Sequence record: ON529858.1
Length of the DNA stretch: 64,000 bases
Reading direction: 5' to 3' (one strand)
In this document: positions 3,501 through 51,788 of the stretch, piece after piece
Numbering within the stretch: the stretch's first letter is position 1
Layout: every line of letters begins with the position of its first letter
The notes under the pieces: generated by a model
What the model was told of the DNA's origin: nothing
Databases searched by the model: none
What the model saw: the letters and a program-made list of their open reading frames with translations, nothing else
Position numbers and translations under genes: made by a program

Positions 3501-6500
3501 CAGCCCTCGCGGTGAAGCGGGCGCGGGTGGCGGCGCGACGGGCGGCGATGGTCCCCACGCGAACGCCGGCACCGGCGGTTCGCAGACGGCGGGCGGCTTC
3601 AACAAGACGGCTCCGAGCAACGTCGCCTACCAGGGCGCGGCGCTCCAGGGCGGCAAGGGCTCGCCCGGCGTCGCCACGACTCCGAGCGCGGGTGCAGGCG
3701 GTGGCGGCGGCGGGGGCTACTTCGGCGGCGGCGGGGGCGGCTTCGACTCCGGCTCGGGCGGCATCTATCCCGGCGGCGGCGGCGGCTCGGGCTACATCAA
3801 CACGCTCGCCGGCGCGACCGGCACGACCACGGCCGGAACCGGCACCGGCGGCGCGGCGGCGGGAACCTCCGATCCTCTCTACCCTGGCGGTGGCGAAGGC
3901 GTCGGCGGCGTCGGCGACGTCTCCGTCATGACGAACGTCAAGGACGGCGGCAACGGCGCCATCACCTACTACGTCACGCCCACGACGGGCGGCGACATCG
4001 GCACCGTCACTCTGACCTCTCCGACGGGCACGGCGCTGCGCCAGGGCGCGGAAGTCCGTTACGATTTCTCGGGCGCGGCTCAGACCGTCGTTGTGCCTGC
4101 AACCGGCACGGCTGTGGTCAAGGCCTGGGCCGGCGGCGGGGGCGGCGGCTACAATCAGAAGGGCGCGGCGACCAACGGCGCCGGAGCCTCCGGCGGCTTC
4201 ATCACGGCGCAGCTTCAGGTCGATGCCGGCGACGTCATCAAGGTCGAAGTCGGCGGCGGCGGCCTGGGCGGACGCACGAGCGCGGCGCTAGGCGGCTGGC
4301 CCGACGGCGGTTCCGGGCAATACGGCGGCGCCTCCGGTTCGGAGCAATATGGCGGCGGCGGCGGCGGCGGATCGACCCGCGTCTACGTCAACGATGTCCT
4401 GCAACTGGTCGCGGGCGCAGCCGGCGGCGGCTTTGGTCCGCAAGCCGCGACTCCCGGCATCGGCTGGGCGGGTCCCGGCGGCGGCCTCACCGGCGGTGAT
4501 GGACGCGGAGCCTATGGCGTCTTCTCTCGCGGCGGCACTCAGATCGCCGGCGGCAATAACGGCTTTGACGGGCCGGGTAGCGCGCTGCAAGGCGGCTCGG
4601 TCACGACCTCGGCCGGCGGCGGCGGCGGCGGCGGCTGGTTCGGCGGCTCGGGCGGAGCCAATGCCAGCGGCGTCACGGGCGGCGCGGGCGGCGGCGGCGG
4701 CTCTTCGTGGGCCGGCGGCTCTCGCGTCATCCCTGGCTCGGTCACCACCCTGTCGGGTTCGATCGACGCCGGACCGGCGGGCGGCTCGACCGATTCCAAG
4801 TATCAAAGCCCGGTCGGCAAGGGTGGTCTCAACCGCTCCACCGCTCCGTCCGACGCCGGGTCTCCCGGACAGGTTCACATCTACTTCGACGGTCTGGCCC
4901 CGGCGAACGCCAGCGGGGCAACCGGGGGCACGATCAGCCTGACCGTCCCCACGGTCTCGACGGGCGTGCCCGCTAATGCCGTGGCACCGACCCAGGCGAT
5001 CGCACTGACGGCTCCGGCCGGCGGCGTGCTGGTCGGCCTTCCGAGGGGTCCTGTCGGCACGATCACCTTCTTCGGCGATCTCACCGGCGAAGCGACGATC
5101 CTCGCCTCGGCCACGCCGGCGATCCCCGGCCTGGAGTTGCGCGCCGAACTCGGCGGTCAGGGCACGATCGAAGCGGTCACCCTGGTTCCGCTGACCGACA
5201 ACGACCTCGCGTGGACGTCGGTGATCTCGGCAACCCTGGTGGGCGAAGTCGACTACAAGAACACGGGCGTCTCGATCATCCGCCTGACGCCGCCGCGCTT
5301 CTACCTGCCCGGCGTCGCCCCAGGCGATCCCTTCGACAACGATCTCGTCTTCAACGCGCCCCAAGGTTTCGGGCAAGAGGGCGTAGACGTCTACGCGGCC
5401 TTCTCGTCTGTCATCGCCCTGACGGCGCCCGGCGGCGACCCGCACGCGGGCGCGCTGGCGCGCAACAACCTCCCGGCCTGGAGCGCGGGCGCACCGGGAC
5501 CCTACACCGCCGCCATCAGCCTCCAACCGCTGCTCGGGGCGACGGCGGGCGGCGACGCCCTGGCCGCCAACGTCACGCCGGTGATCCTCGACCTGACCCC
5601 TCCGGGAGTCGTCGCATCCGGCATCACGATCGACGCTCCGGCCGTCTTCGACAGCCTGATCTATCTGACCGCGCCCACCGGCACGGGCGAGCAAGGCGTT
5701 CAGGCTGACGCGGACTTCGATTCCGTCATCGCCCTGACGCCCCCGGTCGGCGATCCTCACGTCATCGGTTATGCGAGCGCGGACTTCGCTTTCCGCACGA
5801 TCACCCTGACGCGCCCGCTGCACATCGTCGAGGGCAACGCCTACCTGAACATCACGGCCGATCCGCCGTTCGTTCGGATCACGCCGCCGCAGGCCCTGAC
5901 CACCTATGGCGCTTCGGTGCTCGCCACTATCCTGCCGGCGCAAATCCGACTGCGCGCCGCCAGCGCCATCGCCAGCGAGGGCAACATCGCCCTGGCTGTC
6001 GGCGGCCTGGAAGACGTGCCGCTCCTGTTCACGCCTCTGGACGGCATCGGAACGATGCAGCCCGAGGTCCGCTTCGACCCCCTCCACTTCCATACGGTGG
6101 ACGGCTACGTCGAAAACGGCGACGACACCCAAGGCCCGCTGCGATTCAAGCGTTCGCGCGACGAAGGCGCTGTTCCGACCCTCTCGGACGGCGAAATCGC
6201 GCTCAATGAGGCTGACGGGGTCCTGTTTAGCCGCAACGGGGCCGGAAATGTGCGCCAAACGCCCTATGGTGCGCTCCAAATGGGCGGTTTTGCCCCTGAA
6301 GGAGGCGTTTCGGGCCATATTTTGGCTGCTGACCGGTCCTGGAAGCCCGCAACGGCCCGATTCGACCGTCCGATCCGGCTGAGTCCGGCTCTGGGCGCCC
6401 TCGTGCCCTTGTCGAACGACCCCGTGGGCGTCGAAACCCGCGTCCTGCCGAACACGCGCACCCACTATCACCCCTTCTTCGTTCCCAAGCAGGTCGGGGT

Positions 6501-11419: not shown

Positions 11420-11425
11420 TTTCAT

Positions 11426-11499
11426 GGGGTTGGGGCTTGGGTCCCAGGTTCGTTTTGCAAACCTACCGTGTCGGGTTCGAATCCCGATGACTCCACCAA
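11426..11499 (+). tRNA. tRNA-Ala(TGC), irregular anticodon stem
   Basis: Acceptor GGGGTTG/TGACTCC gives G3:U70 and A73 (Ala identity); loop TTTGCAA closed by GT/AC within a mismatched stem. Confidence 0.65.
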
Positions 11500-11660: not shown

Positions 11661-11750
11661 GGTAGGCTGGCTGAGTCTGGCTGAAGGCACCCGCCCGGAA
11701 AGCGGACAGACCGCAAGGTCTCCAGGGTTCAAATCCCTGGCCTACCTCCA
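11661..11750 (+). tRNA. tRNA-Ser(GGA)
   Basis: CCGC-CCGGAAA-GCGG (C33); long variable arm; U73. Confidence 0.87.
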
Positions 11751-11883
11751 AGCTGGGTCCCAGCACCGACGGCGCCCTTCAAGCGCCGGGTCTGCTGGGG
11801 GCAAGAGCCCGAGCCGTTGCTGACACCCCTATCGTGTGGGGACGTAAGGCACACGAGGCCGGCGGGCTGCGCCCTTGTATCAC

Positions 11884-11970
11884 GGATGGTGAACCCTGGG
11901 CGGCCAGGGCGCCGGTTGCTAACCGAACGGAGCCGCAAGGCCTGGGGTTCGAGTCCTCCGCCATCCGCCA
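11884..11970 (+). tRNA. tRNA-Ser(GCT)
   Basis: Acceptor GGATGGT/GCCATCC; loop TTGCTAA; long variable arm; GCCA followed by a T-tract. Confidence 0.85.
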
Positions 11971-11986
11971 CTTTTTTCGCAACAAT

Positions 11987-12029
11987 CTACGTCGCGGATG
12001 TTGACGCCCGCCGGGCGCTCTGGCATCAA
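11987..12029 (+). promoter_or_regulatory. Promoter motif upstream of candidate ncRNA and def
   Basis: ACGTC-GCGGATGTT-GACGC with TTGACG at 12001-12006; the -10 box is weak. Confidence 0.55.
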
Positions 12030-12435
12030 GGTCCCAGGTCGAAGCGGCCGGCAGGTTTCACCTCCCACCGCCCAGCGAGACCTCAGTGTGGAGTTCTTGG
12101 TTGCCTCTCCCGAACAAGGGCGACCACAAAATCACGGTCCGTCCGGGGGTCACCGGACGGGGTAACTCGACGGGTTGATCCTCCGGCTGAGCCACCCGAC
12201 TACCGCGTGCGCTCAGACAGGTCCTGGGTCGCAGAGTCCTAGCCCTGTCCCCTGCTGCTAGGCTGGGGTTCAATGGAACCAGGGCCGTTCTGAGCGCACG
12301 CGGTTCAATAGCTTCGGCAGAGCATGAGGGTGGATTGGGGCCGTGACTCCCCGGTCCGGCGCCGTCACGGGCGCACATGCGCTCCGCCCGCAGTGGTGGA
12401 GAGAACCCGGTTCGAGTCCGGGGCCGAGGACCGCA
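12030..12435 (+). ncRNA. Candidate ~400-nt structured ncRNA ending in a tRNA-like T arm
   Basis: Perfect 16-bp helix 12202-12217/12289-12304; several hairpins; CCCGG-TTCGAGT-CCGGG at 12406-12422; no convincing ORF. Confidence 0.55.
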
Positions 12436-12449
12436 CAGGAGAAGACCCG

Positions 12450-13001
12450 TTGATACGCCCGATCGTCTCTTGCACCGATCCCTTCCTCCGCATCCCGTCC
12501 GTCGAGATCGCCACGATCACCCAGGACGTCCGCGACCTCGCCCGCGATCTGGTCGAGACCGCCCTGCACCATGAGGCCGCCGGCATCGCCGCGCCCCAGG
12601 TCGGCGCCGGCCTGCGCATGGTCTGCTACATCGACGTCCCCGGCGCCACGAACCTGCCCCAGGTCCACCTCAAGCAGTTCTGGAAGCCGACGATCCTGAT
12701 TAACCCCGTGATCTCCAAGGCCTCCGAGGCGATGATCGAGTGGGATGAGGGATGCCTGTCGATGCCGGGCTCCTACTTCCCCGTCAGCCGCCACCGCCTG
12801 ATCGACGTCAGCTACACCGACCTCAACGGCGAGACCCAGACCATCACCGACGCCGGCGGCTACAAGGCCATCTGCCTCCAGCACGAGATCGACCACCTCG
12901 ACGGCATCTTGAACATCGACCGCATCGTCGGCCCGCTCAAGAAGGCTATGATCATGACCTCCTGGCGCAAGGCCCAGCGCCGCGCCCAGCGGGCCGCCTG
13001 A
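12450..13001 (+). CDS. def: Peptide deformylase (183 aa)
   Basis: AGGAG RBS with TTG start; motifs GIAAPQVG, EGCLS and QHEIDHLDG (HEXXH). Confidence 0.95.
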   Translation: MIRPIVSCTDPFLRIPSVEIATITQDVRDLARDLVETALHHEAAGIAAPQVGAGLRMVCYIDVPGATNLPQVHLKQFWKPTILINPVISKASEAMIEWDEGCLSMPGSYFPVSRHRLIDVSYTDLNGETQTITDAGGYKAICLQHEIDHLDGILNIDRIVGPLKKAMIMTSWRKAQRRAQRAA

Positions 13002-13067: not shown

Positions 13068-13163
13068 ATGACCTCCTATCGCCAAAACGTGCAGAACATT
13101 CGAGTCGTCCGGTTTAACCGGACGGGCCGTTCGCATGTGCGTGATAGTGGGACCCAGATTTAG
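13068..13163 (+). CDS. Leader peptide 3 (31 aa; Tyr/Arg/Gln/Asn/Val/Ile/Phe sensor)
   Basis: MTSYRQNVQNIRVVRFNRTGRSHVRDSGTQI; residues 4-18 all belong to the 7 amino acids of the downstream tRNA block. Confidence 0.82.
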   Translation: MTSYRQNVQNIRVVRFNRTGRSHVRDSGTQI

Positions 13164-13195: not shown

Positions 13196-13230
13196 GGCCC
13201 GTCTGGTAACCCAGGCGGGCCTTTTCTTTT
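13196..13230 (+). terminator. Intrinsic terminator (attenuator) upstream of tRNA block 3
   Basis: GGCCCGTCTGG-TAAC-CCAGGCGGGCC followed by TTTTCTTTT. The 5' arm is complementary over 11 bp to CCGGACGGGCC (13118-13128) inside the leader ORF. Confidence 0.85.
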
Positions 13231-13266
13231 GTCCAAAATCCTCAAGGAAAACATCAAGATCACCCT

Positions 13267-13350: not shown

Positions 13351-13425
13351 CGTTCCATAGCTGAGATAGAATAGCGCGGGCTTGAAAACCCCGAGACGGA
13401 GATGCGAACGCTCCTGGGACGGCCA
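13351..13425 (+). tRNA. tRNA-Phe(GAA)
   Basis: Loop TTGAAAA; acceptor CGTTCCA/TGGGACG; atypical T-loop TGCGAAC and G73. Confidence 0.75.
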
Positions 13426-13988: not shown

Positions 13989-14071
13989 GTCGCTCTAACC
14001 GGGCCGGTCTACGAAACCGGTCGCCGTAGCTGGAGTTGAAAAGGGTGGTTCGAGTCCACTGAGCGACGCCA
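13989..14071 (+). tRNA. Atypical tRNA-Arg(ACG): no D arm, 23-nt variable region
   Basis: Acceptor GTCGCTC/GAGCGAC; CCGGT-CTACGAA-ACCGG; canonical T arm; GCCA end. Confidence 0.65.
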
Positions 14072-14165: not shown

Positions 14166-14265
14166 GTCCCGGCTCGATCCACGTCTCGGTAACCGGTCCG
14201 GCTTCCGAAGCCGGGAGCCGTAGCTGGAGTTGAGAAGGGTGGTTCGAACCCACTCCGGGACGCCA
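14166..14265 (+). tRNA. Atypical tRNA-Arg(CCG), 100 nt
   Basis: Acceptor GTCCCGG/CCGGGAC; CCGGC-TTCCGAA-GCCGG; shares the variable segment GCCGTAGCTGGAGTTGA with Arg(ACG). Confidence 0.65.
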
Positions 14266-17568: not shown

Positions 17569-18047
17569 TGGCGCGGCGCGCTGGCGGCTCCAAGCTGTCC
17601 TTCTACACGGACGGCAACCTGGAGGCCGCCTTCAAGCGGCTGATGAACAAGGCCGTCGACCAATACGACGAAGCGCTGGACAAGAAGATGATCCGGCTGA
17701 ACGAACTGATCCTTTCGCGCACGCCCGTCTGGGAAGGCGACACGATCCACAACTGGCGCTGGAGCACCAGAGCCCCGGACTTCCGGCACGAGGCCCCTGT
17801 GGGCGTCCCCCTGGATACCGGATACACGGGACGTCTGGCCCTAGGCGATGAGCCCCGGCGCCGCGCAAACGAGACTAGGCCCCGCCAATCGCTGCGGGGC
17901 GCTCTGCGGGCTCGTGAGCCGGTGGACATCTACCTGACCAACTCGTCGGACACGGCGGCCCTGGTCGAATACGGGCTCGCGCCCACGCCGACCCTCTCGC
18001 GATCGCGAGGCGCCCTGCGTCTGTCGATCAAGGAGGTGTTCGGATGA
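17568..18047 (+). CDS. Putative neck/tail completion protein (159 aa)
   Basis: GTG overlapping the upstream TAG; RTPVWEG..IHNW and IYLTNS motifs resemble HK97 gp10-like proteins. Confidence 0.6.
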   Translation: MARRAGGSKLSFYTDGNLEAAFKRLMNKAVDQYDEALDKKMIRLNELILSRTPVWEGDTIHNWRWSTRAPDFRHEAPVGVPLDTGYTGRLALGDEPRRRANETRPRQSLRGALRAREPVDIYLTNSSDTAALVEYGLAPTPTLSRSRGALRLSIKEVFG

Positions 18048-18119
18048 TCGCGGCCCAAATCTTGCTGCCCGGTCTGCTGATGCGCGCCTGGGTCTCTTTC
18101 TGGCTGGGAGGGTCGGACG

Positions 18120-18569
18120 ATGAATGAACATGACATGCTCCGCCAAGTGCTGGAGCAACAGGCCCTGGCTCTGGTCGGACCGCTGAACATGAAGCTGGTG
18201 CTGGACAACGACGACTTCGTCCAGCCCAAGGACGGCAAGGTCTGGTCCGAGTTCTGGTTCGAGACCGGCAAGACCACGGCCACCACCGGCGGCGGCGCCA
18301 AGGGCTGGGAGCGCACCTCGGGTGTGCTTCAGTTCACGCTCAAGTGCCCCGAGAACACCGGCAACGGCCCGCTGCTGAAGGTGGCCGCCGCGATCAAGCG
18401 CGCCTTCAATCGCAAGCAGTGGAACGTCCCGCCCGAGGGCTACGTCAGCCTCGACCCCGTTTCGGTCCAGGCCCACGGCAAGCCGATGGGCGGGCTCTAT
18501 CACGTCATCGTCGACGCGACCTTCTGGTTCCACCACCGCGACACCGCCGCGCCCGAGTTCTACGAGTAG
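18120..18569 (+). CDS. Putative tail terminator protein (149 aa)
   Basis: GGAGG RBS; ERTSGVLQFTL..P..TG pattern; position before the tail tube gene. Confidence 0.65.
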   Translation: MNEHDMLRQVLEQQALALVGPLNMKLVLDNDDFVQPKDGKVWSEFWFETGKTTATTGGGAKGWERTSGVLQFTLKCPENTGNGPLLKVAAAIKRAFNRKQWNVPPEGYVSLDPVSVQAHGKPMGGLYHVIVDATFWFHHRDTAAPEFYE

Positions 18570-18572
18570 ATC

Positions 18573-18821
18573 ATGGCCTCGGTTCTCGATCTCCCCGCCG
18601 AAGGTTTCGACCGTCGCAAGCCGCTGTTCCGTCTGTTCGAGATGGAGAACGGCACGCTCGAATGGTATGAAGTGTTCAGCCAGACCAACGCGCCCGGCCG
18701 GCGCCTGTCGCCCGCGTGCGAGGCCCAGGTCTGGCGTCATGTCGCCAAGGCGACGTGGCGGCAAGGCTTCTGGGAAGCATTCGCCCAGCACCGGAAGGCC
18801 ACCGTCTATGAAGACTCTTGA
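18573..18821 (+). CDS. Hypothetical protein (82 aa)
   Basis: Tightly packed; phage-like codon usage. Confidence 0.6.
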   Translation: MASVLDLPAEGFDRRKPLFRLFEMENGTLEWYEVFSQTNAPGRRLSPACEAQVWRHVAKATWRQGFWEAFAQHRKATVYEDS

Positions 18822-19152
18822 AGCCCTCCGCTGCGGCTACGCCAATGCCTGCACCTCCGCCGCCCACACTATCACCACGCCCCTCGCCGGCGTCATCTTC
18901 GCCGGCTTCTCGATCGGCTGGATGACCTGGGCGCTGCTGAACCACGCCGTGATCGGCTGGGATGGCGTGGCGACCATCGCCTCGCTCGCCTTCGTGGTGA
19001 TCCTCCAGGCGTCGCAGAACACGGACAGCAAGGGCCTTCACGCCAAGCTGGACGCCATCATTGCGGCCCTGCCCGAGGCCGATGACCGCTTCAAGCGGAT
19101 CGAGGAACGGACCGAAGAAGAGATCGAACAGGCCCGTCTAGCGGCCACCTGA
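18808..19152 (+). CDS. Low-affinity iron permease family small membrane protein (114 aa)
   Basis: Two hydrophobic helices followed by ILQASQNTDSKGLHAKLDAII, resembling the family signature LIQ.TQNRD..ALQ.KLDELI. Confidence 0.7.
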   Translation: MKTLEALRCGYANACTSAAHTITTPLAGVIFAGFSIGWMTWALLNHAVIGWDGVATIASLAFVVILQASQNTDSKGLHAKLDAIIAALPEADDRFKRIEERTEEEIEQARLAAT

Positions 19153-19158
19153 TCTCAG

Positions 19159-19207
19159 GTCAATACGATTCACGACCTCAAACGTCGTGAATCTTGACAT
19201 TAACCAT
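19159..19207 (+). promoter_or_regulatory. Promoter motif (with an inverted second copy) upstream of the major tail gene; TTAACCAT half-site
   Basis: AACGTCGTGAATCTTGACA at 19181-19199; reverse-oriented GTCGTGAATC upstream; TTAACCAT at 19200-19207. Confidence 0.65.
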
Positions 19208-48972: not shown

Positions 48973-51788
48973 CAGCCTTCGCAGTCGATGCAGGTGGCGT
49001 CGGCCATGGGGCTGAGAGCCAGTTGACGGGCTTCGTCCGAAGCCTGATCCGAGGCCTGGGAGGCGTCGGAGACGATCGTCTTGCGAGCGATCTTGGTGTT
49101 GGTGTTCTCGGCGCGCTTGGGCGTCGTCGAGCGCAGGTAGTAGAGGCTCTTCAGGCCGAGTTCCCAGGCCATCCAGTGGATTTCGGACAGGTAGGCGGCT
49201 TCGACCGAACCGTCGCCCGGCAGGAAGATGTTGATCGACTGCGCCTGACAGATTTCGGGACCCCGGTCGGCCGCCAGGATGATGATCGCGCGCTGGTCCA
49301 GTTCCATCGCGGTCTTGAAGACCTTCTCGACGTGCGCCCAGACCACCGGATCGACGGTGACGCCGATCTGCTCGAACGGGGAGGGGACGTCGTCGCCGTC
49401 TTCGTCGACGGTCGGCGTGTTCAGGCCGGCGACCGAGCCGTCGTTGCCGACGATCAGCTTCCAGACTTCCTCGGTGTCGATGCCGAGTTGAGCCAGCTTG
49501 GCCTTCAGGTAGATGTTGCGGACCGGGAAGGAGCCCGACAGCGTCTTGTGCAGGTAGGCGTTGGCGCGGTGAGGCTCGACGGACGGCGAGGTGCCGCCGC
49601 AGAGGATCGACGACGAGGCGTTCGGCGCGATCGCCAGCTTGTGGGCGAAGCGCTCGCCCGTGCCTTCCATGTCCGGGGCTTCACCACGCTCGGCGCCCAG
49701 CTTCAGCGAGGCGGCGTCGGCGTGCTGACGCAGGTGACGGAAGATCGCCTTGTTGACGACGCGGGCGTGCTCGCTCTCGAACGGGATGTCGTGCTTCTGG
49801 AGGTAGGCTTGGAAGCCCAGCAGGCCCAGGCCGATCGAGCGCTCGCGCATCGCCGAATAGATGGCGTCCTTCATCTGCTCGGGCGCCGTGTCGATGAACA
49901 CCTGGAGGGCGTTGTCGAGCATCCGCATCAGGTCTTCGATGAAGCGGGGGTCGTCCTTCCACTCGTCGAACTTCTCGCCATTGGTGGACGACAGGCAGCA
50001 GACGGCGGTGCGCTTGTTGCCGAGATGATCCCGGCCGGTCGGCAGGGTGATCTCGGTGCAGTTGCCGGTCAGGTAGCCGTTGAAGACGATGCGGTTGCGG
50101 CCTTGCTCGGTTCCGCAGTAGGTGGCGGTCTTCCAGGGCAGGGGATGCAGGTCGGCGACCACCGGCGACTTGAAGGGACGCTCGGCGCCGGGCGTGCGGA
50201 CCTGGGTCAGGACGCAGCCAGCTTCGATCAGGGTGTTGACGTCCCAGGCGGGCAGGGCGAAGCCGTTCAGGGTGTCGGTCAGGCGGATGCGCGGCGTGAG
50301 GCCCACTTCCAGCGCCAGACGACGCATCTCGCGGATCAGGTCGCGATTGGTCGAGCCCAGGCTGAGCCACTTCACGCCGTCGATGTCGATCCAGTCGGCG
50401 CCGGCGTCCAGCGCGCCCGCCAGCCACATGCGGCGCGTGGCGTAGCTGAACTCGAACGGGACATGGCCGGAGGCGATCGTCGTGGGCTCGTAGCGCACGG
50501 TCGTCAGGGCGTCGTCAGCCTCGGCGTCGACCGAGTGCGTGAACAGGCGCTTGAACAGGGCCTCGGGCGAGCCTTCGGCGATCGTGACCGCCAGACGGTT
50601 GCGGTCCTCGAACCCGGCCAGGGTGGCGTAGCCGGCGGTGTAGGCCTGCTCATCCGTGGGCTGGGCGTAGCCTTCGACCGACAGGGGCAGGTTGGGCGCC
50701 TCCAGTTCCAGGCCGATCGGCAGGGCGCCGGCGCGGTGCTCGACGCCGTCCTTGTCGTAGAACTTGTGCTCGGGGGTGCAGTCCAGGAAGTCGCCGTCCT
50801 CGAACCAGACGCGGACCAGATCGGCGCTGTCGGCCGTCTTGACGATCTCGACGGGGCTCCAGTCCTGACCATTCCACAGGTCATGCGTCGAGCCGGCCAG
50901 GGCGCCGATCGGCATGTGACCGTTGCGGGTCAGGACTTCGGTGTCGCCGGTGACGCAGAGGTTGGACTGCTTGACCTTCAGGCCGAGACGCTTCTGGGCC
51001 TCGGGCAGCGCAGCGTTCGAATGATCGACGAAGTGCATATAGGGCTCGCCCGTCTGCATCCGGGTTTCGAGCATCAGGCGCCACAGGTCGCGGGCGCGCA
51101 CGGTCTTGATGACCTCGCGGGTCTTGGGCGAGCGCAGGTGGAACGGGCTGTCCGAGCGCACGGCGCGCATGAACTCGTCGGTGATGTTGACCGCGTTGTG
51201 CAGGTTCTCGATCTTGCGGTTCCGATCGCCGCCGGTCGACTTGCGGGCGACGATGAACTCTTCGATCTCGGGGTGGTCGATGTCGAGGTAGTTCGCCATG
51301 GAGCCACGGCGCGTGCCGCCCTGGGAGACGGCGAGGATCAGGCGGTCGTCGACGGCCTGGAAGGGCATCACGCCGGTGGACGACGAACCCTTGGAGGTCT
51401 TCTCGCCGGCCGAGCGCAGTTCGCCCCAATAGGAGCCGATGCCGCCGCCCATGGAGGACAGCCAGATCACTTCGTCGTAGTGGGCCGAGATCGACTCGCG
51501 GCTGTCCTCGACGGCCGTCAGGAAGCAGGAGATGGGAAGGCCGCGCCCGGTCCCGCCGTTGGACAGCAGGGGCGTGGCGAACATGAACCAGCCCTTGGAG
51601 ACATAGTCATACAGACGCTGGGCGTGCGCTTCGTCGTCCGCGAAGGCGGCCGATGCACGAGCGAAGGCTTCCTGGGGCGACTTTTCGTCGCCGACAAGGT
51701 AGCGTTCCTTCAGGGTCTGGAGAGTGAAATCACTCAGAGCGTCGTCGCGCGAGAGGTCGATGGTGATGGCGCGAGGGCTCACAGGCAT
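48972..51788 (-). CDS. nrdA: Ribonucleotide reductase alpha subunit containing an intein (938 aa precursor)
   Basis: FMFATPLLSN, PISCF, GGGIG, QGGTRRGS, TGEPY, QSNL/CTEI, AIAPNASSS, KSLYY, C-terminal CIDCEG. Confidence 0.95.
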   Translation of the reverse strand: MPVSPRAITIDLSRDDALSDFTLQTLKERYLVGDEKSPQEAFARASAAFADDEAHAQRLYDYVSKGWFMFATPLLSNGGTGRGLPISCFLTAVEDSRESISAHYDEVIWLSSMGGGIGSYWGELRSAGEKTSKGSSSTGVMPFQAVDDRLILAVSQGGTRRGSMANYLDIDHPEIEEFIVARKSTGGDRNRKIENLHNAVNITDEFMRAVRSDSPFHLRSPKTREVIKTVRARDLWRLMLETRMQTGEPYMHFVDHSNAALPEAQKRLGLKVKQSNLCVTGDTEVLTRNGHMPIGALAGSTHDLWNGQDWSPVEIVKTADSADLVRVWFEDGDFLDCTPEHKFYDKDGVEHRAGALPIGLELEAPNLPLSVEGYAQPTDEQAYTAGYATLAGFEDRNRLAVTIAEGSPEALFKRLFTHSVDAEADDALTTVRYEPTTIASGHVPFEFSYATRRMWLAGALDAGADWIDIDGVKWLSLGSTNRDLIREMRRLALEVGLTPRIRLTDTLNGFALPAWDVNTLIEAGCVLTQVRTPGAERPFKSPVVADLHPLPWKTATYCGTEQGRNRIVFNGYLTGNCTEITLPTGRDHLGNKRTAVCCLSSTNGEKFDEWKDDPRFIEDLMRMLDNALQVFIDTAPEQMKDAIYSAMRERSIGLGLLGFQAYLQKHDIPFESEHARVVNKAIFRHLRQHADAASLKLGAERGEAPDMEGTGERFAHKLAIAPNASSSILCGGTSPSVEPHRANAYLHKTLSGSFPVRNIYLKAKLAQLGIDTEEVWKLIVGNDGSVAGLNTPTVDEDGDDVPSPFEQIGVTVDPVVWAHVEKVFKTAMELDQRAIIILAADRGPEICQAQSINIFLPGDGSVEAAYLSEIHWMAWELGLKSLYYLRSTTPKRAENTNTKIARKTIVSDASQASDQASDEARQLALSPMADATCIDCEG
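50061..50957 (-). mobile_element. Intein (299 aa) in the NrdA active-site QSNL|CTEI motif
   Basis: Starts CVTGDTEV, ends IVFNGYLTGN before +1 Cys; DCTPEHKF block B; degenerate LAGLIDADG-like WLAGALDAGA. Confidence 0.9.

Follow-up and report, generated by a model that had tools for sequence, protein, structure and literature searches.

The genome analyzed here is that of Brevundimonas phage vB_BgoS-Bajun (ON529858.1; 207 kb), one of the phiCbK-like siphophages of the Dolichocephalovirinae, and coordinates refer to a 64,000-nt stretch of it (the window), in which adding 124000 to a window position gives the record position; a 701-nt query taken across the locus matches this record at 100% identity. 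Our subject is the region 12001-12435, which falls within Bajun's large tRNA cluster: two tRNA-Ser genes and a tRNA of tRNA-Sec-like shape (11884-11970) are its 5' neighbors, the peptide deformylase gene def is its 3' neighbor, and the wider neighborhood consists of tRNAs, a NadR-like gene, def, and PhoH. From its promoter toward def, with all features of the locus on the plus strand, the region holds a core RNA (about 12036-12200), a 103-nt hairpin (12202-12304), and a tRNA-derived element (12312-12432). It is non-coding; the open reading frames (ORFs) that overlap it, other than def, have no Pfam or PHROG family match. We favor, with confidence slightly better than even for the explanation as a whole, processing included, a single transcription unit made of three pieces: a core RNA shared with Caulobacter phages, a hairpin specific to Bajun, and a decayed tRNA-Arg(CCG).

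The promoter (11989-12029) comprises an upstream element, ACGTCGCGGATG, a -35 box TTGACG at 12001-12006, a 17-nt spacer, and a -10 box CATCAA at 12024-12029. It belongs to a recurring phage motif, ACGTCGnnGATCTTGAC, with 46 matches in the window at two or fewer mismatches against 4.4 ± 2.2 in shuffles (∼16 of the 46 being close copies ahead of genes), and it is homologous to the promoter that precedes an RNA in phiCbK (TTGACA, CCCGC, CATACG). The spacing from the -10 box and the analogy with phiCbK place the Bajun transcript start probably near 12036; in phiCbK the first helix of the RNA, P1, likewise begins 7-8 nt past the -10 box, in agreement with the Bajun spacing. A terminator scan of the plus strand found no terminator-like site between the promoter and 13196; the first convincing intrinsic terminator 3' of the locus, at 13196-13231, lies past a conserved 31-codon ORF, and the promoter motif does not recur between the RNA and def. 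The core RNA, the long hairpin, and the tRNA-like piece are probably all transcribed ahead of def.

By homology, the first piece is the Bajun orthologue of an unannotated phiCbK-type RNA of ∼215 nt with its own promoter, and a divergent copy of it. This RNA is found in 26 Caulobacter phage records, in none of which (0/26) it is annotated; one example lies in JX100813 at about 51070-51290 (positions 3601-3820 of extract L002). In phiCbK, an unannotated gap of ∼530 nt separates the last tRNA-Ser from a terminator and contains, from 5' to 3', a tRNA-Sec-like tRNA, the Bajun-like promoter, ∼215 nt of non-coding sequence, a second promoter, and the 31-codon ORF. The gap and its synteny were examined in phiCbK, Magneto, Karma, Swift, Rogue, BL10, BL57, and BL64, and the genomic place is common to both groups of phages, after the tRNA-Ser genes and before the 31-codon ORF, with def inserted between RNA and ORF in Bajun. 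Karma (extract L035 1300-1788) and Swift have an extra minus-strand gene between the tRNA-Ser(GCU)-like gene and the promoter of the RNA; the position of this insertion, 5' of the promoter, indicates that promoter and RNA move as one module. The Caulobacter-phage copies fall into four sequence types (phiCbK/Magneto/Karma/Swift, BL57, Rogue/BL64, and BL10), and the indels among them are not multiples of three in length, a pattern that speaks against coding sequence. According to the phiCbK genome paper, tRNAs were the only functional RNAs that Rfam detected (Gill et al., 2012; PMC3556154). Neither the Bajun RNA nor the phiCbK-type RNA has been named or studied before.

A covariance model built from the four Caulobacter-phage RNAs only, with Bajun excluded (R1), scores highest, across both strands of the 64-kb window, at 12033-12160, where it aligns over its full length at a modest 16.4 bits (E about 0.02, as rough as E-values of this kind are). 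The same model found no match in the tRNA regions of Colossus, CcrPW, Kikimora, Papperlapapp, BL9, and BL47, and a blastn search of 50,697 phage records with the Bajun RNA returned only the phage itself and short T-arm matches. Motif scans (GTGGAGTT, a gap, CTCCCNNACAAGG) of GTDB, IMG/VR, and JGI data gave no additional relatives of the core: in IMG/VR they recovered three contigs with the sequences of BL10, Rogue, and Karma plus one chance match in a coding region, in the JGI metagenomes 22 matches, none of which (0/22) had the hairpin, and in GTDB genomes 26 matches in taxa that, judged by titles alone, are unrelated; a host homologue was not found this way. With the def protein as an anchor in IMG/VR, the relatives were at most 40% identical and their context was unrelated. 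At the Rfam 15 gathering threshold and at E ≤ 10, the interval 11700-12600 gave nothing relevant (only the tRNA-Sec-like match at 11884-11966), in line with an earlier note on this DNA that had called the RNA unclassified, and the phiCbK counterpart likewise returned tRNA-type matches only. That note had also pointed to a promoter, a perfect 16-bp helix, an 8-bp hairpin, a T arm followed by GCCGAGGACC, and GTCGAAG near the 5' end (12038-12044), all of which are present, at the coordinates that it gave.

The 5' domain of the core (12036-12083) is closed by helix P1, in which AGGUC (12036-12040) pairs with GACCU (12079-12083); P1 closes this 48-nt domain only and is formed by what are predicted to be the first transcribed bases. 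Its pairs differ by sequence type, reading AGAGC/GCUCU in phiCbK, Rogue, and BL10, AGGAC/GUCCU in BL57, and AGGUC/GACCU in Bajun, where CGAA follows immediately 3' of the 5' strand (GUCGAAG, 12038-12044). Next comes an invariant motif, GUGGAGUU (12088-12095), which is the same or nearly so in all five sequence types, and then hairpin H1 (12099-12106 with 12118-12125), whose 11-nt loop, CUCCCGAACAA (12107-12117), has the consensus CUCCCNRACAA and is likewise identical or nearly identical across the five types; an A/C-rich linker runs from there to 12135. The H1 stem has been wholly replaced and is still paired, as GGUUGCC/GGCGACC in Bajun vs CCGCCUCC/GGAGGCGG in the Caulobacter phages. GGAG could pair with CUCC of the loop as a pseudoknot or, alternatively, GUGG with UCAC (12132-12135), and these bases never vary. 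R1 aligns the 8-bp hairpin (12139-12146 with 12153-12160, loop GGGTCA) to the CGUCGGCG...CGCCGUC hairpin of the Caulobacter-phage RNA, and a possible 3' closing helix of the core, identified by eye, joins GACGGGU (12169-12175) to ACCCGAC (12194-12200). GACGGG...CCCGAC also flanks the 3' hairpin of phiCbK, and homology to about 12200 was judged by eye.

In an alignment of the five sequence types, which was itself fitted to the model, standard pairs occupy 98.7% of the cells, and 16 pairs are altered on both sides; shuffling the columns gives 4.6 ± 1.7 such pairs, and sliding the partners by 1-3 columns gives 0-4. Several helices covary. The phiCbK-type RNA shares with Bajun the homologous promoter and position, P1 followed by CGAA, GUGGAGUU, the H1 loop, the hairpin after it, and GACGGG...CCCGAC. 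It differs in being ∼215 nt long with a longer first domain and one extra hairpin, and it ends in a small hairpin and a U-run, whereas the Bajun version continues into the 103-nt hairpin, the tRNA-like element, and def. Because GUGGAGUU, the C-rich loop, and the linker stay fixed while the stems drift, a sequence-specific contact is suggested, and the pattern points to the fixed parts of the core contacting a protein or G-rich ribosome-binding sites.

The same comparisons bear on whether the region could be non-functional debris, a decaying tRNA copy next to drifting, transcribed intergenic DNA. The pseudogene-like character of the tRNA-like part, the lack of relatives of the long hairpin, and the mere 16 bits that the core scores against its relatives would all fit such an origin. 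The promoter, P1, GUGGAGUU, and the H1 loop are, however, conserved across genera even as compensatory substitutions alter the stems, the RNA is 100% identical in 11 of the Shapirovirus records listed and 99.1-99.6% identical in 5 more, and a perfect 16-bp helix is unlikely to last in drifting DNA. We therefore regard debris as a highly improbable account of the region.

The GTCGAAG near the 5' end had led the earlier note to see a resemblance to the Ro-binding strand of bacterial Y RNAs, and in its stronger form this would make the conserved 5' domain (stem, CGAA internal loop, stem) a Y-RNA-like partner of Ro60/Rsr. GUCGAAG does fit the YrlA motif string GNCGAAN0-1G (PMC4201824), BL57 has GACGAACG, simple CGAA-bearing hairpins occur as phage Y-RNA-like RNAs (PMC12135203), the relative CcrColossus is reported to carry Ro60 and YrlA, and Bajun and the phiCbK phages encode RtcB, which in bacteria is often linked to Rsr. 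The segment is, however, made up of a strand of the covarying P1 (its "GGUC") plus CGAA, and the motif varies, being AGCGAAC in phiCbK and BL10 and altered to GCCAAC in Rogue. There is no Y-RNA-type match in Rfam, and Gill et al. mention neither Ro nor TROVE for the phiCbK group. No Ro60/TROVE gene is annotated in Bajun, none lies within 4 kb, and none was found by Pfam in 14 large hypothetical Bajun proteins, a scan that left smaller or divergent proteins and the host outside its scope; Colossus gp105, which adjoins def and was considered as a Ro60 candidate, is not Ro60 by Pfam. Known Y RNAs (YrlA, Yrn1, and phiLo Yrl1/2) resemble the Bajun RNA in having a CGAA motif by the 5' stem and a tRNA-like module in the transcript, but they are 80-130 nt long, form the motif stem from the RNA's two ends, and lie within 4 kb of a Ro60 gene, none of which holds in Bajun. 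Size and order of elements are also unlike those of YrlA, which has T-like and D-like stem-loops in its middle, whereas the Bajun T arm sits at the far 3' end within a tRNA-derived unit. A Ro60-binding Y RNA is, on balance, very unlikely.

The second piece is an extended hairpin of 103 nt (12202-12304), with a perfect 16-bp base, 12202-12217 being the exact reverse complement of 12289-12304, and near-continuous pairing above it to a total of about 35 bp. The 16-bp repeat is the sole perfect inverted repeat of at least 14 bp with a loop of at most 150 nt in the window, and the fold of 12198-12308 has z = -8.0. It is not followed by a U-tract and was not called as a terminator, it has no relative in the phage collection by blastn and is specific to Bajun, and its position is that of the small terminal hairpin and U-run in the Caulobacter-phage RNA.

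This hairpin contributes almost the entire signal in the fold of the 416-nt whole (z = -4.4), which matters for the proposal that the whole region forms a single ornate RNA of ∼400 nt, representing a new large class, with GGUCC at its 5' end pairing with GGACC at its 3' end to close it. The minimum free energy (MFE) fold of the whole stretch does pair 12030-12034 with 12428-12432, as the earlier note had supposed, large RNAs near phage tRNAs exist, and Bajun has a GOLLD-like RNA elsewhere in its genome. Since the transcript start is inferred to lie near 12036, however, GGTCC at 12030-12034 may precede it and be untranscribed, and GCCGAGG, at the 3' side, has a better local partner at 12312-12318. 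Relatives exist for the 5' third only: what is conserved in other phages is about 130-170 nt at the Bajun 5' end, within an RNA of ∼215 nt there that has no tRNA-like end. The single ∼400-nt class accordingly lacks support and is, in our estimate, quite improbable; what stands of the original proposal is a non-coding, structured, promoter-driven region whose 5' part belongs to an unannotated RNA family. GOLLD and ROOL are, like the Bajun RNA, phage non-coding RNAs near tRNA genes, but the conserved part here is several-fold smaller and much simpler, and no covariance model of this type matches 12001-12435.

The third piece, the tRNA-derived element (12312-12432), ends 5 nt before the def Shine-Dalgarno sequence. 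Its 7-bp acceptor (CUUCGGC, 12312-12318, with GCCGAGG, 12423-12429) is stacked on the T arm, CCCGG-TTCGAGT-CCGGG (12406-12422), which is followed by GCCGAGGACC; an expanded D region is closed by GCAUG (12322-12326) with CAUGC (12376-12380), and an anticodon-like 7-bp stem (12382-12388 with 12395-12401) carries a 6-nt loop, CGCAGU. The MFE fold of 12305-12435 is a four-way junction of acceptor, D domain, anticodon-like stem, and T arm, although the tRNA-like part alone is unremarkable in stability (z = -1.7). Its 3' end reads A, CC, G, without CCA; in repeat family D1 the other 11 T-arm/acceptor ends read CCA, whereas this element reads CCG.

A second covariance model (R2), built from an odd tRNA-Arg(CCG) of five relatives, matches 12312-12433 (25.4 bits, E 2e-4), and a local search without filters gives an alternative register at 12350-12432 (23.5 bits). 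In the odd tRNA-Arg(CCG), a D stem of only 3 bp carries a loop of 17 nt, the anticodon loop (CUCCGAA) is canonical, CCA is encoded, and covariation is seen in the acceptor and anticodon stems. We find it in 32 records, including Kikimora, Gurke, Colossus, CcrPW, and all phiCbK-type phages; the phiCbK copy (extract L002 4954-5036) and those in the 31 other records are 90-100% identical, in phages of Caulobacter and of Brevundimonas alike. Most records leave it unannotated, Colossus labels it a pseudo-tRNA ("tRNA-OTHER"), and the phiCbK genome paper states that phiCbK is without an Arg tRNA (PMC3556154). The Bajun element shares with it an identical T arm, AG after the acceptor, and an AGAG(G/A) variable region, and the Bajun anticodon stem is the Colossus sequence (CCGCC, opposite GGUGG instead of GGCGG); it differs in the 6-nt loop, a D insert of ∼49 nt, the CCG end, and its genomic position. 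On these grounds of homology, 12312-12432 is a decayed copy of the subfamily's odd tRNA-Arg(CCG). The tRNA-like 3' end seen at the outset is thus real in its acceptor and T arm, but it is a degenerate relative of a tRNA and not part of the conserved RNA.

Could the element nonetheless be a working, if aberrant, tRNA-Arg(CCG), with the rest of the region as spacer? ARAGORN does call a tRNA-Arg(ccg) at 12349-12432, the T arm is that of the conserved odd tRNA-Arg(CCG), and the acceptor stem is intact. The element lacks, however, a 7-nt anticodon loop with U33 and a purine at 37: in the homologous register the loop is the 6-nt CGCAGU, and the ARAGORN register puts C at position 37 and a C-A mismatch in the acceptor. 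With the Rfam tRNA model (threshold 29 bits) there is no match at E ≤ 10, it ends in CCG where the cluster's other tRNAs end in CCA, and Bajun has another Arg tRNA-like gene with a CCG anticodon at 14183-14265; for these reasons it is not a credible decoding tRNA, and we give a working one scarcely any more weight than a very remote chance. Two further ideas were dropped: a T-box, suggested by GGGUGGA at about 12328, for which Rfam gives no match, and a group I intron within a tRNA, for which there is neither a matching 5' exon nor an Rfam intron match.

A transfer-messenger RNA (tmRNA) would be consistent with the length, the pseudoknot-like element, and the presence of a T arm close to the 3' end. 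Neither ARAGORN nor the tmRNA models of Rfam give a match here, though, and the alanine identity pair G3:U70, the CCA end, and a tag frame are absent, as the earlier note had recognized in part. The genome has a genuine tmRNA elsewhere (record positions 192406-192838; extract L102 4507-4939), a permuted, two-piece molecule of the alpha-proteobacterial type with the tag VAANDNAPFAVREAIAA; it is part of the GenBank annotation, and ARAGORN as well as two Rfam models confirm it. With no match at the locus and a separate tmRNA in the genome, we rule this identity out, its probability being practically nil.

The gene that follows, def (12437-13001), has its Shine-Dalgarno sequence AGGAGA at 12437-12442, a TTG start at 12450, and its stop at 13001. 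The GenBank coding sequence (BAJUN_02550) instead starts at an ATG at 12324, inside the RNA and 126 nt too early: the Pfam Pep_deformylase domain begins at residue 44 of the annotated ORF, and the deformylases of Kikimora and Colossus start at the residue aligned with Bajun TTG 12450, seven bases past AGGAGA. Because both the onset of the domain and these starts contradict ATG 12324, we take TTG 12450 as the start. Just 3' of def lies the arginine-rich 31-codon ORF (13068-13163), with its own promoter and terminator; it is conserved in 49 Dolichocephalovirinae records (tblastn), mostly unannotated, adjoins the RNA in phiCbK-type phages, and has no Pfam or PHROG family match.

The proximity of def raises the possibility, also put forward in the earlier note, of a cis-acting leader, riboswitch- or attenuator-like, that controls the downstream gene: def in Bajun and the 31-codon ORF in phiCbK-type phages. 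In Bajun, neither a promoter nor a terminator separates the RNA from def, so this part of the proposal keeps some probability there; the tRNA-like element stops 5 nt before the Shine-Dalgarno sequence, the loop bases UCUCC are complementary to GGAGA of def, and the terminator-like site after the phiCbK RNA is weak. On the other hand, the genes that follow the conserved core vary between phages (def vs the 31-codon ORF, in 26 genomes), and the presence of the core in 26 genomes without def downstream implies that control of def is not the reason for its conservation. The 31-codon ORF, moreover, has a promoter of the phage motif to itself in phiCbK as well as in Bajun, known riboswitch and leader families in Rfam match neither the Bajun locus nor its phiCbK counterpart, and the part next to def (hairpin and tRNA-like element) is the part that is not conserved. 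A leader function is therefore unlikely, though it deserves to be kept in mind.

We favor instead the three-piece transcription unit, for which the following course of events can be proposed. Host RNA polymerase would start near 12036 and read through all three pieces into def. RNase P recognizes an acceptor stem stacked on a T arm, and it would cut 5' of the tRNA-like acceptor, at 12311/12312, while tRNA 3' processing enzymes would cut after 12430-12432. The ∼35-bp duplex could serve as an RNase III site or, alternatively, could shield the new 3' end of the small RNA, taking the place of the terminator hairpin of the Caulobacter phages. The products would be a stable small RNA and a def mRNA with a leader of ∼17 nt. 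The small RNA would then most likely act in trans through GUGGAGUU, the loop CUCCCNRACAA, and the A/C-rich linker; such a role, as a protein-binding site or as a seed for G-rich ribosome-binding sites, is the weakest step of the proposal. In tRNA-mRNA co-transcripts and in mascRNA at the 3' end of MALAT1, a module of acceptor and T arm likewise stands between two RNAs and is suited to RNase P, and the Bajun tRNA-like module resembles these tRNA-like processing signals, with cleavage in Bajun itself inferred only. The tRNA-like non-coding RNA YrlA of M. smegmatis is cut by RNase P and has CCA added in vivo (PMC4201824).

Several points weigh against this explanation. The R1 score in Bajun is modest, the covariation count comes from only five sequence types in a model-fitted alignment, and the core alone folds in a thermodynamically ordinary way (z = -0.9). 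The 5' acceptor strand of the tRNA-derived element is ambiguous, beginning at 12312 or at 12349/12350, and both the RNase P cut and the RNase III site are read from the shape of the RNA only. In four RNA-seq libraries of phiCbK infection, the phiCbK locus appears in assembled contigs of 3-14 kb with a single mean or flat depth, which is uninformative on ends or processing. Finally, the phiCbK RNA's own terminator is weak, so that there, too, the RNA could be a leader of the 31-codon ORF.

As to its function, a more specific possibility, and a rather doubtful one, is that the phiCbK-type RNA serves, independently of Ro60, as a Y-RNA-like scaffold or decoy in the repair or decay of RNA, or else as a translational regulator, and that its maturation in Bajun would depend on a recycled tRNA gene, a processing signal that would release the def mRNA as well. 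The idea draws on the CGAA-bearing stem-loop domain, the pseudoknot-like element, the invariant C-rich loop, and the occurrence of RtcB and many tRNAs in these phages. The RtcB RNA ligase, relevant to tRNA repair, is encoded at record positions 17923-19161 (Pfam E 1e-123) and has counterparts of ∼71-77% identity in phiCbK-type and large Brevundimonas phages.

Among known systems, the closest analogy is with RNAC and RNAD of T4 (species 1 and 2 RNAs), small stable RNAs from the phage tRNA region whose role is unknown (PMC3014915, PMC9697503). The Bajun RNA, too, comes from a cluster of phage tRNA genes; it is a predicted RNA, whereas discrete transcripts of RNAC and RNAD are on record, and no relation in sequence or structure is to be expected. 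By this analogy the Bajun RNA is best filed as a phage small structured RNA of the tRNA cluster.

The GOLLD-like RNA mentioned above, a large ornate RNA of this phage at another locus, lies on the minus strand at record positions of about 191484-191902 (extract L102 3585-4003) and is unannotated; it matches the Rfam GOLLD model over its full length at 104 bits (E 1e-27), short of the gathering score (150), and adjoins tRNA-Cys, the tmRNA, and two tRNA-Met genes. Within the window, the tRNA-Sec-like tRNA at 11884-11970 is also unannotated and has a phiCbK counterpart (extract L002 3473-3560); against a gathering score of 47 in Rfam, the two score 26 bits (Bajun, match at 11884-11966) and 44 bits (phiCbK). 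Its loop, UUGCUAA, gives the anticodon GCU, and the anticodon stem is weakened in the Bajun copy; it is probably a third tRNA-Ser, Ser(GCU). Two more tRNA-like sequences are absent from both the GenBank record and the ARAGORN calls, one at 13351-13422 (40.7 bits with the Rfam tRNA model) and one at 11425-11499, which ends in a T arm and CCA. Two Arg tRNA-like genes, at 13989-14071 (anticodon ACG) and 14183-14265 (CCG; this second copy unannotated), have no normal D arm, a 7-bp acceptor being followed almost at once by the anticodon hairpin, then a long segment, and then the T arm, and a similar gene is found in Kikimora (extract L042 2899-2982).

For the annotation of this genome, these results mean that def is 126 nt too long in the GenBank record and that several tRNA-like genes and the GOLLD-like RNA are missing from it. 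The arrangement in Bajun, a natural experiment, suggests how a dead tRNA gene may be retained to mark the site at which a small RNA is cut from an mRNA. Because phiCbK is a standard tool in Caulobacter work, finding a conserved, promoter-driven RNA within the tRNA clusters of 27 phages would give this well-studied system a further candidate for a regulator or an RNA-protein component.

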